Assembly: GCA_016748015.1 (NCBI GenBank)
Contig: JAAOMT010000258.1
Span: forward strand, 684,173 to 748,172
DNA: 64,000 nt
Direction: 5' to 3'
DNA from: Geosiphon pyriformis uo1
Taxonomy: Eukaryota; Fungi; Glomeromycota
Shown here: one piece after another, positions 1-46,926 of the stretch
How positions within the stretch are numbered: position 1 is the first letter of the stretch
Layout: every line of letters begins with the position of its first letter
The notes under the pieces: generated by a model
Database searches by the model: none
What the model saw: the letters and a program-made list of their open reading frames with translations, nothing else
Told to the model about the DNA's origin: nothing
Translations under genes and position numbers: made by a program

Positions 1-3000
1 TTTATCTGGTGAATATTTTTTGAATTTTTTTATTGATCAGAATTATAGCTAATTTATAGATTATTTTCGTATTATGTAAGTAATAATACAGTTTATTAAG
101 AACACTATTATATGCTGTATTAAAAAAAGTTTTTTTTTTGACTTTTTTGGAAATTAATAAAGCATATTGACAAGTTTGGTCACATACTTCTCCTTTTATT
201 ACAATATTAATTCAGTTGTATTTCTTAAATAGTAATTTTTTACATATAAAACAGAATGTGTTATCTTATTTTATGCTTTATTTTGGGCTGCTAAATTGTT
301 CTCTGTGACAAGTTTTATAGTAATAGCAAATATAAGTTTCATATTTCTCTTTAAATAATATGCAAACTCTTATAGATAAAAGCTTTTTGTTGTAATTAAT
401 GCATTTAAATGAAATATAGAGTGGTTGTTTTTTGGTTCTAATTTTGAATATAAAACATATCAATTATTAACTGATTTGATTGTAAAGATGGATTGTTAGC
501 TGGTTTTTTTGGGCTATAATTATGTTAGTTATAATATAAATATTTCAAATAGCTGTTCTGTTTTCTTAGCCTAATTGAATGTTAATTCAAAAGCCATATA
601 AGTCTTAGTAATCACTTTTTTTTTTCTTCTCAAATTTAAACACTAAAACTTTTTTAAATTATTTGTTGAAAATACTATATATAATAAATATTCAAATATA
701 TTGTTTTTGGTATAAGATTTTAAATTCTTGGGTTTTCTAATTAAAATTTGCATTGGTTTTAAAAAGTCAATTGTTTTTGACTAAAACTTAATATTAAAGT
801 ATATCTATTATTAAAACTTTTATTAAAATAATAATTTTATTAATTATAAAAGAAAAATTGTCAATTTATTTTACTGAAAATTTTTTTCATACTATTGGCT
901 GTAACAATAACTGTTTAGACTGATCTATTTATGTTTCATTTGAATTGTTATATTAATTGGTATATAATAATATTTTTAGTAGATTTACTGTTTAAGATTA
1001 AGCAAATTTGTTTTTTTTTACTTTAGTTTTAATATATATATCAATAATTGTTTTTTGTTCTATAATAGCTGTATTATTAAACAAAAATAATGATTTGTTT
1101 GCTTTAAATTCAAATAGAAAGATATTAGAAAAATTGGCATTTTTAGCAATTTTGGCTAATAGAATAGTGCAATTATTGTTGGAAAAGATTTGTCTTGATG
1201 TTGCAGCTTTATTTTCAAAAAATGCAGTTTAATAAAAATCCGATTTTTTAGGCATTGTTAAATAGTTATGTTGTATGTAAAAATAATTGAGTTTTGTTAA
1301 ACTGTATTACAAAAAATTAATTGATTATTAAAATTAACTCTATTGTTGTTTGAAAATCGATTTTGTGATATAAATTGGTTTGTTAAACCAATTTTTGTGC
1401 AAATATTTGATATTATTAAATGAATGGTAATTAATATTGTTAAATTTGTAGTAGTTGCTGAAATTATTGTTATATTAATTGTGAAACAGATTAGTAACAG
1501 TTGTTTTGAAATTTTTATAAGTAATAAACTAGTGGTAATAGTTAATAATATAACTACTAGAGTTAAAAATAACATTAATTATTTTTTTGCTATTGGTTTT
1601 GTTGTATTTTTTGGTAGTTTTGTTTCTAATATTCTAAAATTCTACAATAATAACAGTTTTAAAATTAGTTATTTAATAACATATTGCTTTGGTTTTGTTA
1701 TTATAATAATTAATATTTTTGTTGTTGCTGCTATTGTTGATTTATAAAATAGTTTTTGACTTTCTTAGTAAGTTGATCAATCTTTTTTTCAACTATTGAG
1801 CTGGTTTTTTTAATAGCTAGATTAACAAACTTGATATAATTTGCTTTTTTTATAATTTTGTAGTTTTTTATATATTAAATAATTATAACTAAATTTGTTA
1901 AAGCATGAAAACAAACTTTTTTAATTAATTTACTTTTTAATTTAGTAATAAATTAATTCAAAATTTGAGTATTAAAATAGTATTTATTGGTTTTCAATTG
2001 GTAAATTCTTCTAAGAAGTTTATTAAACTTCTTAAAATAGATTATAACAGATTTAGAAAGTTCTTGTTTAATATTATAGAACTAATTTTAAAAAGTAATA
2101 AAGATGTTGTTATTAGTAAATTGTTCTAAAAAAGCATTTTTAAATGCTTGCCAGTTTTTAAAAAGTTTGTTTAAGTTCTTAAACCATTTTTTTGCTGTTT
2201 TCTAAAAAAAACAAGAAATCACTTTTAATATTTTTACTGTATTTCAACTATTTACATTTCCTGTTTTTGAGACTTTGTTTAATTATTCTTGAAAATTAGT
2301 GTTAGCAGCTTTTTTTGTAAATTTGGTGATTTTTGCAAGATAAATAGTTACCATTTTTTCTGTATTTTTGTTTTTAATAGTTTTATTTTTAATAAATTCA
2401 GAAATATTTTTATTGTTATTGAAATAATTACTCTGGTTTTTTGCTAAAAAATCAAGAAAATTTGTGTTGATAAAAATTTGTTCAGACTATTGTATTAAGT
2501 TTTTTGGTGATGTAAAGTCTTCTGGTCTTGAAATATAATTAAATAGTAAATTTGGTGTCTAAACTTGTGCAAAAAAAGCTGAGAAGAGTGTAATTAAAAG
2601 TGTTAGTTTTGAATTGGTTTTTTGTTCTGGTGTTTGTAAGTATTAAAAGATTGTCTTTAATAGATTAAGTATTGTATAAATTGGCTAAGTATTTTTCTGT
2701 TTGTATTTTTTGCTTGTTTCAAATTTAGATTCAAGTTCAAGTATAAAAAATTTAAATGGTTTTTGTTTAATGTTTTAAAAGTAGTTTTAAAGAGTAATTT
2801 AAGTATTATTGTTTGTAAACTGTTCAAAAAAGCAGTTTTAAAAGTTGTTTAATCTGCAAAAAAAATAACCAAGTTTTCAAACTATTTACTAGTTTCTTTA
2901 AAAAAATAAAAAATTATTCTTAATATTTTAATTGTATTCTATCTATTTGTATTTTTTGCTTTAATAACTTGATTAAATTATTTTTGAAGACTGGTTTTGG

Positions 3001-3799
3001 TATTTTTTCCAAAGAAATCAAGAATTTTTGTAATGTATAAAGTTATTTTTTTATTTTTTTTGTTTTCTTCTTTATTTTTTTTTAATTGGTTCAAAAATAT
3101 TTTCTTTATTAACTAATGTTTTTAAGTATTTGCTCTAATTTTTTGCTAAATAATTAAGAAAATTAATACTAATATAAATTAGTTTTGATTATTGAATTAA
3201 ATTTTTAATAAAGTTGTTAGGTTTTGAAAATTAATTAAATAGTAAATTTGATATTTGTGCTTAAGCAAATAAAGTTAGAAAAAATGTAATTAAAAGTAAT
3301 AATTTAGAATTAATTTTTTGTTTAAGTATTTGCAAATATTAAAAATTTATCTTTGGTGTATTATATATTATATAAATAAGTTGAATGTTTTTTTATTTTT
3401 GTTATTTGTTTTAAGTTTAAACTTAAGTTTAAGAACAAATTATAAGTTGGCAGAGTATTTTTTTCACAAAATTTGATAATATTATAATTAAGTTTTTTAA
3501 AATAAGTAGCATAAACATTAATATTAATAGATTTTGAATCTTTATTTGAATAATAAATTAAGTTTTCAAGAAGATTTTTTTGACTTTTGTAATATTGTAG
3601 TTTCCAAAAAAATAGTTATTAATTTAGTTTTTAATATATTAAAAAAAAATTTTTTTTAAAAACTATGATTTTATTTTGAATTCCAAATTATTGTTTACAA
3701 TAAATATAAATTAATTAATAATATTTTAGAGTTGTTATATCTAATACAGTTATCACTTTAATTTAATTATTGCTGTATTATTCTTGAAAGAACACCAAA
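1..3799 (-). mobile_element. Degenerate Ty3/gypsy LTR retrotransposon, 5' part (PBS, gag, aspartic protease); continues beyond window start
   Basis: Minus-strand translation ~1750-2160 gives NWQAFKNAFLEQFTNNN...FNKLLRRIYQL...IDQLTKKVKNYF (retrotransposon gag). ~880-1080 gives ICLILNSKSTKNII...TVIVTANSMKK (protease IxLILDSGSAGSII with D>N, G>K transitions). PBS-like TGGTGTTCTTTCAAG directly follows the LTR end at 3800. Many stops. Confidence 0.8.
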
Positions 3800-31700: not shown

Positions 31701-34372
31701 ATTGCTCATTCAAAAAATATAAATCTAGCATAATAATGCCTACTTTAACACTGACACAAATATATTTTGTTCATTCTAGTTTAAAGGTTTTCTGCTTTTT
31801 AAAGGCTTTTAAGTTCAAAATAGAAAGTATAGTTTAAATTCGAATAAAATCAAACATTCGATGGATTTGAAAAATTGCTTAGAATTGAATTTTCTTCAGA
31901 AGAGATATTAAGCACACAAAATTAATTGATTAAATTATTTAGCTTTCAGCAAATACAAAAAGAATTGGTGCAAAAAATTTTCTCTTTATCAGTAGATAAT
32001 TCGGTGAACTTAAGAGCTATTTAAATAAGGCCCTATAAAACTAAAAAACTAAAATTAATTTATTTTTAACATATTGAAACATATAAATAAATATTCCTAT
32101 TTTTTTTAAAAGAACTCTCTTTTCCAAATATATATTTTTTTTAACAAATAGATTTCATTAACTAGAGATTAAAATATTTTAACATTGCTTACTATACAAA
32201 TATTTTATATTTCTATTAATTTATGTACAATAATTCTTAAATATGAATAATAAAGAATGAATACTTTAAATACATTTCTTTAAATCTATATTGTTATTTG
32301 CATTATTCTACTATTCTCGCATAATCAAAATTTAGGGTAATGGTTTTTAACATTTTACGTGAACAAATAAATATTAGTGCATTTTTAAGAGGATTCTTTC
32401 AAAAGCTGAGATTTATCGCTTCTGCCAAAGGTTCTATTGAAGAACCTAGATGATTTAGTAGCACCAGTCAATGTTCAATTATGCAAAATTTGAAGATTAT
32501 TGCCATTTGAAATTCTCTTTCCTTGACTATTATCATTCTTTTCTGACATGGAACCGAAATTTGAAGAACCAAGGTCATTATCTTAATCAAGAAAAATTTA
32601 AACAAAGTTTCAATTCTTTAAATGATTATCTGAACCTCACAAATGAACACAATTGTAAAAGTTATTAAGATATTTTCTCTTTTAATTTGAATTGTTTTTT
32701 ATATAATGTAATTAATTTTACTAAATATCTAAGAAAATAGTTCTCATATTAAATTGGTAACCAAATATTACAAAAAAAGGTTAATTTCATTGGACTTTCG
32801 AATATGGCAGGAAAATATTATTAAATCGAAATTAAACTTTTATATTTTACAAAATTATATTTTGAATTAATTAAACAAACAATATACCAATTCGAAACAA
32901 TTTATGTTAAAAAAATTTAGGTATTTATTTTATTTAATTAGAAAAAACCTGAATCTAATGTTTCATATATATTCATAATTTCAATAGAATTTATTGTTTC
33001 ATGTTAAAGATGAATAAATTAAAAATGAGAATTACATAAATTTAAAATACAATTTTATATTAAAATAATTTATATTTTCAAAATTAAGTGTGGCACACTA
33101 AATAAATTATTTTTCAAAAATTAATTCTTAATATTTTTACATACAGATTTTTAATGTTATTAGTAAAATATTAACTATTTTGTAATTAATAAATTGTTAT
33201 CTAAGTGATTGTGATCAATATTTATACATTAATTATAGGGTGAAAAAATGAATTTTAGTTTCCCGCTAATAATAATTTTCGTGCAAAGATTAAATTCTAT
33301 CTTCTATCAATTCATGAAATGATTAAAAGCAAAGAATGAAAATGAATCAATGAATCATAAAAATTGCTATATGTTTTACTCGATTTAGAAAATCTGTTAA
33401 GAACTACGAAATAGTGATTTTAACATAAACTTCTAATAAAATTTAAGATTAAAGAATGTGCAGACTTTTTATGCATATTTTTCTTCAGTGAAAAAAGCTT
33501 ATTAAAATCAAATTTAAATAAACTCAAAATCTTTGGAGTTTTCTGCGGGAATCTGTTAATTTGTAATTTAAATAAATTTATAATTGTTTAAATATTTTGA
33601 ATCATGAAATTAAATATGAATTTGATACTAAAAAATACATATATATAATTGAAAATAATTATTAATAATAATATTAAAAATTATGAAACTTGTCATTATT
33701 AATTGTAAAATAAACTAAATTTCAATTTTTTATAATATTTGTTTTTTTACTAGGATTTTTAATATCTTTATTAAATTGAATAAATAAATAAAAGACTTGC
33801 ACAAGTATTCGTCAAATAGTTCAAGATTTTGGAGTTTGTTTCTATAATTATGTTAATTAGTCGATATTGATCCTTAAAACGGTTTGAACTTAAATCAAGG
33901 CAATATATAATAATAGGATTTTTTGATTAAAAGCAGTTTCTAAAAAATAATTAATTTGTTTTATAACTTTTTATTGAAATCCAAGCTAAAAAAATTATAT
34001 TAAACTTGTTATTAAGATACCTTATGAATTTATAAAAGTCTCAAAGAAATTTATTAATAAGTTATTAAAACTAGCAATCACCAATCAATGTGTAACTCAA
34101 TTTTACGTTTTCATTTAAACTGAAAATAGCAAAAAGACAATGCAAAGCATAGTTTCTTACGCCTTTATCATCATTTGAGTTCTACTTATTTAACCATTCT
34201 CAGAACTTTCTAACATTTCAGAATTCTTCAAGGTCTAGCCTTTTCGGGAATGTGATTTATTAAAATTACAGTTGAAATTCTTATTTATTGGCAAGATGAA
34301 CTCTTTAAAAATCTTTCTTTACCTTTCTAAAATATTAGAAATTTGATAATCTATTTTTTTTGCTTAAAAATC

Positions 34373-35253
34373 ATGGCTTCAACTTCATTAATTGAAAATG
34401 TAACTTCACTCTTTGATTGGCTTAAAGGAGCATTGATTGTTATAAAAGAAAATTTATCTATTTCCTAGCTAGAAAATATTCAAAAGTTGCTGACTTGGTA
34501 AAAAAATATCTTGTGCACAATCAGAAAAAACTTGAAGATTTATTTGATTGTTTGAATAATAAAAGTTCAAAGTGTTCGATAGATTATATTTTACTCGGTT
34601 TTTCTTTAGAACATAGGATTGGAACTATTCTTAATTCGACAAAAGCATTTTTAGAATTTCAGAGAGCAGCAAATCCAGAAGATCCTTTAGATCAATCTTT
34701 CTTATATCATTGTTACAGCATTGGAATTAGTACTTTACAAGATTGAGGAAAAGCATTTAAGCTCTATTCAAAAGTAGCAGAAGCAAAAGATTTAAAGGCA
34801 CAATACAATCTTGCACTTTGTTATGCTAATGGAGAAAGAACAATAAAAAATAAAGAAAAAGCATTTGAACTTTATTCAAAAGCAGCAGAGGCAGAATATT
34901 TAAATGCACAATACAATTTTGCAAATTGTTATGCTGAAAAGAAACAACAAAAATTTAGAAAAAGCATTTGAACTCTTTTCAAAAGCTGCAGAGGCAGGAC
35001 ATTTACTTGCACAAATTGCGCTTAGAGCATATCATCGAAATTGATTGGAAACAACAAAAATCTGGAAAAAGGGAGAAATCCAAGTCCACAAACCAGTATT
35101 GGAACATATTATCGAAATAAATGGAAAATAATAAAAAATCTAGAAAAAACATTTCAATTCTATTTAAAAACAGCAAAGACAAGAAATCAAAATACACAAT
35201 ATAACTTTGGATGGTATTATCAAAATGGATGGGAAATCACAAAAAACCTTTGA
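34373..35253 (+). pseudogene. Sel1-repeat (SLR) protein pseudogene
   Basis: Repeats KAFKLYSKVAEAKDLKAQYNLALCYANG, KAFELYSKAAEAEYLNAQYNFANCYAE and AFELFSKAAEAGHLLAQ, with an in-frame stop at 34744-34746 and frameshifts. Confidence 0.8.
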
Positions 35254-36095: not shown

Positions 36096-37699
36096 TTACC
36101 ACCAGGCATCAACATTGTCAAGATCAGGACGACCACTTTTATTCATTGATTCTTAGAATGGCGTACAGATTGTTTAGCGGTTATTTTCTGATTATGATTA
36201 GTATCCCCGTTGGGCAAAAGATGAAGTAACTATCAGTTCGTCTTTATCATTGCTTCGTGGCGTCCAAAAAGTTCTTTGCGTTGAACACTACAACCGCGAG
36301 GTGGTTCATTATAGGAAGAGCCAGAGTTTGTGAATTGACTTAGCCATGGTCTAATTCCATCATCAGCTTCCCTTTTATTTCTCCATGGTATATCAGGGCA
36401 ATTTTCATTAATGTCGCTCCGTAGCCTATCTTTTTGGGATTCCCTTGCAGGCCATAGACTCCTGAGAAAAGGTTCGTTGATTAAATATCGGTTCAATGAC
36501 TTCCTGACTTCCTTTATTGAATAAAAGTTACCGCCACTTGGATAGTTCCCAGCTTTATTTTCTAGTCTAGTCTCTCACGGTTTATTATTATTATTATTAT
36601 TAAAATTCCAGTCTCCACCGAGGCATATTCGAGTTCCAATCACCTTTAGGACTTAATCGCTCTTTATTAGCCCTGGGCTTATGATTATTTCCCAGGGCAC
36701 ATTCTTACTCCAGTCGTCACTACTCAGGTTATGATTGGAGCCCATCCGTCACCAGAAGCATCATGGACTGATTTTGTTTCGTTTTTTGTTTTCCCAAGGT
36801 ACTTTATGTGAATTCCAACCGCTCCCATCACCAACATCATTTGCACAAGGCGCTTTTTCAGTTTCCCATGAAGCTTTCCAGGATTCCAATTATTATCACC
36901 ATCTCAAAAAGGATCACTACCTCTTTCAGAAGGACAATCTCTAATCGTATGTCCTTTATGCAAACTAGTAATTAGATTTTTACTCTGATTTGTATTATAA
37001 ATCGAAAAAATCAATAATTGAAATCTACCTTTGCCACTTTTAGTACAGATGATTGGACACCTTTCGAATCACATGTATGATTTTGAGAAAAGAGGCATTA
37101 GTTACTAGTATCCGAGAGAAGGACAAGATTATTGCTTTTGACCTATATTCAGCGTAATAGTCGGGCGCTCTTCTTAATTGGATTTTCAAGTGATCAGTTT
37201 AAGAGGAATTTTTCAAAGTTTTTTGTCTTACTTTGTCCAATGATCACAAGAACCATAATTTTGGTAAGTCAAGGGAGGTACTTCTAAAAGTTAATAATGA
37301 ATTTAAAAGATTTGGTTCAGGACAATCCCTAAAAGCGAGTATATAAAATAAATTAACATTGATAAATTAATCAAAAGAAACCATTTGATACATACTTTCC
37401 AAGATGGCCTTTGGCTTTACAATTGAAGCACATAGCTTCGTGATTATCTCTTAACGGGATCTGAGGCGCCAACACCGACAGTTCGGGGAAGCCAAGAATC
37501 GCCCATTACAAGGTTGGCAAGATATCTTTCCTTTCAAGCCGATATAGGTTATTATTAGAGCTGATGTTAATTATCACTGTACGTCTAATCCAAAAAAACT
37601 TCCCAAGGCCACAATGTGAGCAATACACTTCGAGTCTCTGATGAAAACACTATTTGTAAAATTTTTACCCTAAAAACCCACCTGCAGACCGATTTTCAT
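36096..37699 (-). pseudogene. Disrupted gene with CCHC zinc knuckles and a Trp/Gly/Asn-rich C-terminal region
   Basis: Spliced remnants CFNCKAKGHLGK|DCPE and ICTKSGKG|HTIRDCPS, with GT-AG introns splitting the knuckles, followed by GSGWNSHKVPWEN, DDWSKNVPWEN and GDWNSN. Stops and frameshifts throughout. Confidence 0.55.
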
Positions 37700-38068
37700 G
37701 GTCCAATTCTGGGAAAACGAAATATATAATTAATGCATTAGTACTTAAGAGAAATGTTCCAATAATCGTTTTCAATAACTATATAGCATTGAACCAGGAA
37801 CTATCCTTCAGACTAGCAGTCCCAGCTTGCATCAGCGTCGAACTAGCAGTTCATTACTGTTGGACTAAGTTCTTAACTCATTCAGGCATCAAATTAACAT
37901 TATATCCCTAATAAACAAATTCAGAGAACTCTTACCCTATCTTGTTAACAGCAAAATTATGATAGACACCTGACGCTCAATAAATTTTGGTGCCACAAAT
38001 GCATGTGAAAAGAAGATTTTTGTAAAAATTTTTCTAGTCTCATTTTTCACGGTTACGCGTCTTCAAAA

Positions 38069-40743
38069 ATGTCGAACGATAATGAACCTTACTCAGGTTA
38101 CTCCGGTAAGTTTTATATTAAATGACTCAACTTCCGATCCAAAATTTCTTTCTAATAGATCCTCTTCAGTTCTCGCCTCCTACTTAAAGGACCGTGAAGC
38201 TTGGTCATTCTATGGTTTCCTAAAGTCTCACCGTAATGTTATTGTAAATTCACCACCCTTTTCAGAAAAATGGGAAGGCCTTGAGAATGCATGGGCTACT
38301 CGTTTTTTGAGGGCCGTCCAAGAAATTATTCCAAATAACTATAAGGCTTTGGGAATAAAGGTTTTATCTTTCTATTTATAAAGATTCTTATTGCAAAATC
38401 AAATATAGCGAAAGGGGGCTCCTGAACGGTTGTCGGTCGTTCAGGGGTATTCGGTTGTCGGTCGACCCAAGTAATGATGGTTGCGCTCCTGGTCGGTTGT
38501 CGGTCGACCTTGGGTATCCGGTTGTCGGTCGGGCGCCATCATTGCGACTTGCTAAGATTTGCAAGATCGAGAAAATCTTTCATAATTTGGTGTTTGAAGT
38601 TTTTATGTTACAGTCACAAAACGTTGTCATTCTATTGTCTTCGCAATAGGTAAAGTCTGAATGCTTAAATCAAGGGTTAAAGCTTTATTGGGATGAAATA
38701 GTGCGTGAGCGAAAAGAAGTGAGTCAAATCTTAGATGTCATTTGATTGCTCTGATTATTATAACTAACGTAATCTATTATATAAAATAAGTTGTCGGTTG
38801 AGAACATACATGTTACTGGCAGTCTCGATCTGTTAGGTAAAGTCGGGAAGTATAATATTCAAAAATTAGGATCAAAATATCCTGAAAATCCGAAGCCAGG
38901 AGATGGTTGTCCAAAAAGGTAAGATTATTTGGGACTTATTAAATTTAAAGTTTATCCAAAGCTTTTTACTTACACTCTGGACATGATCTTATATTTTGAT
39001 GAAGCTTAGAACAACCCACATTGGGGAAAAGACGAAACACAAGCCATTGTGAGGAAGAGGTACAGATGCATATATTTTTAGCTACAATTATTTTGTCATT
39101 TATTTATAATGAAAACTACACTTTAGAATGATCAAACTGAGCAAAACATTCTGTCAGAGACAAAACGGACGAAAACTACAATTGTGGATGATCATAAAGG
39201 CAAGACAGATATTGTGGAGGACCATACAGATGAGATCGAAGACAATGAAAATATTGAATTTGATCTCGATTCACTTATCAGGAGTCTGCAACAAGAATTA
39301 ATATACGAAGTATTAAATTTTGGATTCCTTATTTTCCTGTTTTATTTTTATTAAGAGTTCTTCACATCAAAAGTTGCGGACGTATTTACACTTCGACTGC
39401 CAGTGTCATAGTTTTACTGGCGGCCCAAGCTATTGCCTTGGATATTAATCCCAATGACTTTTTTTGTGAATTAGTGGAAAGTTGGGAATATAAACGTTTC
39501 ACAAAAATTTCGTGAATATCAGCAAGAAGTTCTTAAAAAGCTTAAGACAACTAAATTAACTTGGCATAATACATATGAAATATTGTAAGTGTTGTGAAAT
39601 TTATAAGTTTGAAAATCACAATTATGCTCACATGTAAATGTAATTTCGCATTCACTTTAGGGCACTTTCATCCATTATTGTGCTTTGCCGAAGCTGTCCC
39701 TATCCAAATTATTTTACTAATGAAGAATGGCAGATGATAACTCAAACAAATCCACATACAATCCATGAACAAGTGATACCAGCCTCAGCATCAATTGCTT
39801 TACATGAGGCTGTGGTCAAACATTTGTCAGGCCAGGACAGTTATATGCATGCTGATGAAACTCCAATGAGCAGAGCAGTTGCACGAACTTTCAATGAGTT
39901 GTAGGTTGATGTTCTTTTTATTTTAATTTATTTAATAGAATTTAGTCAACAGAATTTATTTAACATATTCAGACGAGAAAATGTACCTGATCTTGCACCA
40001 CAAAAAACTTCAGAGGATGAACATTGTTGTCAATATTTGCATCCTTATATACGTCCAATTTTTCTGAAGAAATACAAGGATTATGAAGTGCAGTTGAATC
40101 GTGCTATCAAGGGCACAAGGCAAAGACCTGATCTTTCTTGTACCGTGGATACGGTACCTTTATTAAATTCTGAAGTTAAGCCATTAGGGTCGAGTACCCT
40201 AAAAAAGAAAAAGGATTTTGCAAAAGTTAATTTGCGAGCAAGGAAGACAATCAATCAGCTATTGACCTTGAAAGGTGGTCCAGGAAAAACAGCAATGCTC
40301 CTTAACTTTGGTCTGTTTTATTATATTGCTACCAGCTTGTTATCTTTTATTACTAAACAATTTATTGGAATTAAAGGTGATATCGTTCAAACATATTTTA
40401 TGGACCTACAATTTGATGGATTATATCGATCATGGCCTTTTCTCACAACAAAATTGGTAATTGACGAGCCCAGTTTACCTTTGATTGAGTCAAATATTGC
40501 TCATTTTGTGGCCTTGGAGGTATTTCATATTTTTCTTTATATATATATCATGTATTATTCTTTATATATATATATCATGTTTTTTTATTTTAAAATTTTC
40601 AATAAATATCTGCCCAGAGATGTGTAGGTGAACTTGCGAAAGATTATAAAAGTCGAAGGGTTCCATTCACACCACCTTTACAAATTCGGTATATGCGTAG
40701 TATTCCAGACTCTCCACAGATCCGTAACATGTTAGGTTTATAA
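38069..40743 (+). CDS. Intact ~539-aa protein with a C-terminal PD-(D/E)xK restriction-endonuclease-like domain (Crinkler/REase-type family), 11 exons
   Basis: Exons 38069-38105, 38170-38360, 38650-38718, 38791-38918, 39005-39059, 39127-39309, 39475-39584, 39661-39900, 39973-40310, 40377-40519, 40618-40743 join via GT-AG introns into one 1620-nt ORF. Motifs SEDEH...QRPDLSC...NSEVKP...KDFAKV. Basic NLS-like LGKRR and KRTK. Confidence 0.8.
38376..38585 (+). ncRNA. Putative structured intronic RNA: basal helix enclosing two three-way-junction modules with four GUUGUCGGU loops
   Basis: CGGTTGTCGGTCG at 38427, 38452, 38494 and 38519, each closed by a stem. Compensatory changes between modules. 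Basal pairings AAAGATT/AATCTTT, TTGCAAA/TTTGCAA, TAGCGA/TTGCTA. Confidence 0.7.
39361..39470 (+). ncRNA. Putative structured RNA element in intron 6 of the nuclease-fold gene
   Basis: Outer stem TTCACA/TGTGAA, AAAAGTTG/TGACTTTT and GGA/TCC encloses hairpins CTGCCAGT/ACTGGCGG and CCAAG/CTTGG. The 3' arm ends at 39470, just before the TTAG acceptor. Confidence 0.5.
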
Positions 40744-46844: not shown

Positions 46845-46926
46845 GACGGCGTGTCCGAGCGGTTAAGGAGTGTGACTAGAAATCACATGGGCTTTGCCCG
46901 CACAGGTTCAAATCCTGTCGCCGTCG
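46845..46926 (+). tRNA. tRNA-Ser (anticodon AGA), intronless
   Basis: Acceptor stem GACGGCG/CGCCGTC, D-arm GTCCGAGCGGTTAAGGAG, anticodon arm TGTGA-CT-AGA-AA-TCACA, long variable arm GGGCTTTGCCC, T-loop GGTTCAAATCC. Confidence 0.97.

Follow-up and report, generated by a model that had tools for sequence, protein, structure and literature searches.

Background

Why does one intron of a nuclease-like gene in Geosiphon pyriformis carry a folded RNA block, and what could such a block do for the gene? The window (the whole stretch of DNA analysed, 64,000 nt) contains this gene at 38069..40743 on the plus strand. It has 11 exons, supported by splice joints and by the deposited product G9A89_010082 (P0118, 539 aa). 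A sequence-only reading of the locus had placed intron 2 at 38361-38649 with a length of 289 nt. This is right: the intron runs from GT to AG, and P0118 joins the flanking exons across it. The same reading gave 64-98 nt for the other introns. That range holds, except that intron 6 is also long at 165 nt. The structured element is at 38406-38554 (+), inside intron 2.

The host gene and its protein

The gene is intact. A search with exon 9 and then a follow-up search recovered a Glomeromycotina/Endogonales family, in which P0118 is the window gene. Genes of this type are multicopy and do not share neighbours. The protein is laid out as a helical header, an acidic linker and a REase-fold domain. 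Pfam and PDB sequence searches gave no match.

The header is the N-terminal 130 residues, which are variable and apparently helical. It has no family name: Pfam returned nothing, and the Atlas returned only unnamed Mucoromycota clusters below 0.8. Its single-sequence model (pLDDT 45) is too poor for a structure search. Exon 2 (38170..38360, +) encodes the first part of the header, and exons 3-4 with intron 3 (38650..38918, +) encode the rest. Exon 2 has a pN of 0.17-0.37 against a pS of 0.50-0.55, and exons 3-4 show in-frame conservation with exon 2 only after splicing. The exons on both sides of intron 2 are under purifying selection, so splicing must occur at times. A paralogous copy of exon 2 (window 38165-38312) with other upstream sequence is present in X1, X2 and X3, and the same header may occur elsewhere in the Geosiphon genome.

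The C-terminal 335 residues were modelled with a pLDDT of 86. This model matches the REase folds of BpuSI (Z 8.1) and DrdV (Z 7.9). It must be noted that its top structural matches are mitoribosomal proteins (Z 9.2-9.7), and that Foldseek gave no significant match with it. The E...PD...ExK residues are present in the domain, and the PD-(D/E)xK core in exon 9 (39973..40310, +) reads E...PD...SEVK. Going by the model, the C-terminal domain has the REase fold expected of Crinkler/CR proteins. Nuclease activity is predicted from the residues.

Architecture of the element

The four copies of a 13-mer on which the sequence-only reading was built are at 38427, 38452, 38494 and 38519, where 0.06 would be expected by chance. 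They are carried by two three-way-junction modules, and these are present as claimed, together with the helix P4 under module 2. All coordinates that follow are on the plus strand. Module 1 (38415..38468) consists of P1 (38415-17/38466-68), P2 (38418-29/38437-48, loop 38430-36), an AU linker (38449-50) and P3 (38451-54/38462-65, loop 38455-61). P4 (38471..38545, with 38471-82 paired to 38535-45) carries module 2 (38483..38534). This module repeats the plan with P1 (38483-84/38533-34), P2 (38485-96/38504-15, loop 38497-503), an AU linker (38516-17) and P3 (38518-21/38529-32, loop 38522-28). Everything is closed by a basal helix P0, in which 38406-38411 pairs with 38549-38554. A much longer basal helix (38376-38411 with 38549-38585) had been drawn, but only about 6 bp of it has counterparts in homologues. 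Since the long helix is not conserved, the related claim that removing the block leaves a normal intron of about 80 nt does not generalise.

Most pairs of module 1 P2 and of P4 have a pair probability of 0.9-1.0. Folding against shuffled controls favours the element moderately (z -2.5 to -2.7), so it is the comparative data that carry the case. The z-scores do not pick the strand either, since the minus strand is even lower than the plus. The preference for the sense strand that had been read from G-U pairs is nevertheless correct, and is shown by conserved G.U pairs and by splice joints.

Conservation in orthologous introns

Four further loci have this intron with the element in it: L009 of Ambispora gerdemannii, L010 of A. 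leptoticha, L016 of Acaulospora morrowiae, and L011, a metagenome contig similar to a Rhizophagus locus in its exons 3-4. The window, L009 and L011 share 84-85% identity over the element, compared with 62-75% over the exons, about 45% at four-fold sites and 51-60% over the remainder of the intron. In a four-sequence alignment 98.8% of stem cells are paired, with 7 compensatory pairs, and 0/500 shuffles equal this (the shuffles ignore relatedness, and two of the four sequences are close). The Acaulospora element is below blastn detection. With it included, 130/130 cells are paired over 13 pair columns and ten modules, a count that leans towards structure given that the columns were anchored with our own pattern. 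The tandem three-way junctions have invariant G.U pairs and a fixed junction linker. What is conserved, across species that are only distantly related, is a covarying structure at a fixed site of the pre-mRNA.

The Rfam 15 covariance models gave nothing at the gathering threshold in this region, and the best hit (E 2.6) lies off the element. A match to a described family would have counted against the sequence-only reading, as would a homologous intron without the motif or its covariation. Orthologous conservation, covariation and the empty Rfam search agree with that reading in calling this a selected RNA structure. The covariation supports a real, undescribed structured RNA family in Glomeromycotina.

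One can imagine a neutral origin, where the block is a MITE, a minisatellite or a palindromic duplication, or else a hidden coding exon. The element is internally duplicated, and the genes that hold it are multicopy without shared neighbours, which is what an insertion might look like. However, there is one copy per locus and always in the orthologous intron, and neither the window nor the fetched loci contain any other. Terminal repeats or a target duplication were not seen. A neutral insertion also does not explain conservation above that of the exons with compensatory changes. For a hidden exon one could point to a frame that is open for 95 codons through the Geosiphon intron, and to the deposited models P0163, P0164 and P0132, which take part of the element as exon. 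One-base indels in the element shift this frame between species, and it is closed in the homologues. Both versions were already disfavoured, and we regard them as extremely improbable. The element itself would account for the recurrent gene-model errors at intron 2.

A coding frame through the intron by frameshift or readthrough was rejected for the same closed frames. Decayed loci of Rhizophagus type (L012 at 2900-3200, L013 and L014) keep exons 3-4 and have lost exon 2 and the element. A DNA-pattern scan of metagenomes had no match, and three viral matches to the pattern were discarded, as they reach at most 16 bits and do not fit the covariance model.

Intron 2 is retained

Splicing was followed in transcript assemblies X2 and X3, two runs with uncertain labels that come from two studies. 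They hold spliced contigs from which rare isoforms are dropped, and give no isoform ratio and no RNA ends. Introns 3-9 are spliced out in both, intron 10 is spliced out in X2, and the intron-1 joint is in X3. No contig of X2 or X3 has a joint across 38361-38649. In X2, record 9 continues without a break from exon 2 across intron 2 into exon 3. In X3, record 13 extends over 38374-38718 ahead of its first joint, and its start at 38374 is not readable as an RNA end. Intron retention, one of the fates that the sequence-only reading had allowed for, is what the contigs of both assemblies have. The assembled Geosiphon transcript retains intron 2, and a minor spliced form is compatible with the contig data.

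The retained intron (38361..38649, +) is 3n+1 long. It brings an in-frame stop at 38379..38381 (+), which leaves an 82-codon frame without the nuclease domain. Retention of the element-bearing intron would give an early stop in all five genes. Retention itself was seen in one species, Geosiphon, where an unproductive splice isoform is associated with the RNA structure.

The splice signals must be considered here. The 5' donor GTTTTA (38361..38366, +) agrees with GTRAGT at 2/6 positions and is the poorest of the ten introns. Donors at the element intron are weak GT sites in general, and GC in a sister subfamily described below. The branch word YTRAY is absent from Geosiphon intron 2 and present in the Ambispora and metagenome copies, but four spliced introns of the host gene likewise have no YTRAY. 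Retention in Geosiphon may stem from weak splice signals alone. As a separate observation, a donor-like GTAA or GTGA opens the 5' strand of P4 (window 38469-38476). In each of the five genes the helix buries this word, and none of the transcript contigs showed it in use.

The sequence-only reading had likened the element to sponge RNAs. The transcripts give no support to an excised sponge: in them the element sits inside an intron-retaining but otherwise spliced transcript. We argue that this points to a gate on splicing that acts in cis. One can still imagine a functional RNA of antitoxin or sponge type, either the excised intron or the transcript that retains it, which binds the header and neutralises, stores or scaffolds the nuclease. 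The retained form was assembled in both studies despite its early stop. The loops are repeated and gene-specific. There are 2 modules here and 3-4 units in the sister genes, a variation that fits a tunable valency. Yet the element always occupies one intron position with a weak donor, and no free RNA was seen in contigs that cannot reveal RNA ends. We consider a functional RNA of this kind unlikely.

Loops, headers and sister subfamilies

The Geosiphon loop is UUGUCGG. It had been read as a 9-nt loop GUUGUCGGU, but the loop-proximal pairs covary (G-C to U-A, and G.U to A-U in Acaulospora), and the loops across homologues are therefore 7-8 nt long. The four loops were also said to be identical and invariant. 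They are identical in Geosiphon only; homologues read Y(U/G)GUYR plus 1-2 nt. The 9-mer also occurs a fifth time, at the junction of intron 3 and exon 4 (38790). This occurrence was considered as a target and rejected, since neither Ambispora nor the metagenome copy conserves it, and Leu-Ser-Val codons explain the sequence there.

What does the element travel with? The Ambispora genes have the same header and the element with a different C-terminal domain. Loci L001, L002, L004 and L005 have a nuclease 77-80% identical to that of the window, with another header and other loops. By these comparisons the element appears to follow the header and not the nuclease. Since header and loops are physically linked, their shared inheritance proves nothing by itself.

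The four loci belong to a sister header subfamily and carry arrays of 3-4 two-hairpin units (L001:3660-3920, L002:1380-1620, L004:3320-3600, L005:2780-3000). The intron that holds the arrays is of GC-AG type and interrupts the header at a similar point. Each unit is a long hairpin, a short linker and a short hairpin ending in GUCGA. The homology to the window RNA is architectural, as covariance model R1 does not detect the sister units. The loops of these units are specific to the gene and recur on the two hairpins of every unit. For unit-1 stems, identity is 0.80 between genes and 0.48 when they are set against the other units of their own gene. The loops do the opposite, at 0.43 between genes against 0.88 within a gene, a result from three sister genes whose permutation p treats non-independent loops as independent. 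Selection for a gene-specific partner would give this pattern, whereas homogenisation of whole units would not. The display of one motif by several loops, a feature of the sponge and antitoxin type, is present. Of the multivalent display first proposed, the invariant identical loops have to be given up, and the concerted change of the sister loops supports the rest indirectly. In a third subfamily, from Funneliformis (L015:554-797), a hairpin motif like GG(U/A)UCGUCCCU occurs twice in the header intron.

Loops that kiss one another, and so fold or multimerise the RNA, would on their own require concerted change among the loops of a gene. A central CG/CG between the P2 and P3 loops can pair in 19/20 cells, with one C-G to U-A change, and the sister loops offer UA or UUAA. 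This amounts to 2 bp only, and one Acaulospora module has a C.A mismatch. Concerted change also affects loop positions outside the pairing core, and P2 and P3 differ much in length. Kissing is very unlikely to be the explanation.

A splicing switch could also answer to a small ligand or to a factor of the host instead of the gene's own product, either like a riboswitch or by mimicry of the tRNA-Asp anticodon loop. The tandem three-way junctions, with their invariant G.U pairs and fixed linker, would suit such a switch. The P3 loops Y-U-GUC-R are ones we take to resemble the tRNA-Asp anticodon loop, and the Geosiphon loops fit its form (7-nt loop, conserved U, 5-bp stem). Among the homologues, P3 loops are mostly of 8 nt and the conserved U is missing from many P2 loops. 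Any loop would match YUNNNR about 1 time in 16. The Rfam search gave no riboswitch or tRNA match, and loops that differ between paralogous subfamilies disfavour a single common ligand. We think a switch of this sort quite unlikely.

Comparison with known systems

CsrB/RsmZ sponges and the type III antitoxin ToxI are multi-hairpin RNAs that bind proteins, and ToxI is cognate to the toxin encoded next to it. They share with the element the repeated structured units presenting one motif. They differ in being bacterial and independently transcribed or processed, with other folds and motifs, while the element has no Rfam match. The fungal intronic TPP riboswitch is a three-way-junction RNA that controls splicing from within an intron. 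The element is also a three-way-junction RNA within an intron, but it is without a match in Rfam and its host gene is not metabolic.

Two structured pre-mRNA elements are closer in kind. Plant 45ABC in RBP45 genes (PMC13485355) autoregulates splicing with the gene's own product as its demonstrated ligand, and for the fungal rpl30 motif (PMC5640933) the own product is the proposed ligand. Like these, the element combines a conserved covarying structure at a regulated splice event with an unproductive isoform. Their hosts encode RNA-binding or ribosomal proteins, whereas the host here is a modular REase-fold gene, with a repeated three-way-junction unit, gene-specific loops and a putative self-ligand. 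The Drosophila P element (PMC7776569) retains its third intron. There too one retained intron removes the catalytic part, leaves an N-terminal product and restricts a DNA-cutting enzyme. Control in the P element is by an exonic silencer, host proteins and piRNAs and not by a conserved intronic fold, and the host gene here is a REase-fold gene and not an established transposase.

The host protein resembles Crinkler/CR proteins, in which a header is followed by a REase domain (PMC5289972). Both have a variable alpha-helical N-terminal header and a REase-fold C-terminus with parts swapped. This is a comparison of domain layout that does not establish membership. The ubiquitin-like LXLFLAK header, an NTPase or kinase domain and a Pfam match are not seen in the host protein. 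No intronic RNA for Crinkler/CR proteins was found described in the literature. The element family was not found described either, in a search outside which most subscription journals fall. A survey of fungal structured RNAs (PMC5640933) does not mention Glomeromycotina, and another (PMC8216456) covers Ascomycota only, so Glomeromycotina lie outside its coverage. By these comparisons the RNA family appears to be new, and its functional kind, an autoregulatory pre-mRNA structure, would be one that is already known.

A proposed splicing gate

We argue that the intronic structure probably acts as a switch that limits nuclease output. It would work in cis from its place in the header-splitting intron, with the weak donor on one side and the acceptor on the other. 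In the default state the weak donor and the folded block would hold the intron in, the message would stop after 82 codons, and no nuclease would be made. Full-length protein would require splicing of intron 2. With its repeated two-hairpin junctions the RNA would offer one short loop in several copies. Each gene would have a different partner for this loop, and the simplest candidate would be the gene's own header domain. If the header binds, the result may be negative feedback on a potentially self-harming nuclease, the output of which would be self-limited. That the RNA gates splicing and is read by a partner specific to the header, probably the protein of the gene itself, seems to us to have an even chance of being right. 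Such a gate suggests how Glomeromycotina keep an expanded header-plus-nuclease family quiet.

The splicing gate could be part of a system of self-recognition. The nucleases would then be a polymorphic family in which the loop code of each header-intron RNA matches its header, gates splicing and neutralises the cognate nuclease. We consider this possible but doubtful. If it is true, a fungus would have an RNA antitoxin. Should loops and headers prove cognate, they would form a natural diversified RNA-protein code that could be addressed with short RNAs and a 130-residue domain.

Other features of the window

Intron 6 of the host gene (39310-39474, +, 165 nt) has a 3' part that folds well (z -3.55), but it is spliced. 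No counterpart was found in the fetched loci. Upstream of the gene there is a divergent spliced transcript at 37396-37917 (-), with a minus-strand intron at about 37530-37680 in X2 and X3 and no long reading frame. A short segment at 37790-37880 contains a repeated ACTAGCAGT word, could form hairpins on either strand and has several relatives among the X1 contigs; it is possibly a small multicopy element. A decayed Sel1-like repeat coding sequence with a 108-nt period lies at 34300-35250 (+). At 46845-46926 (+) there is a tRNA gene, with the anticodon AGA (Ser) as read by eye.
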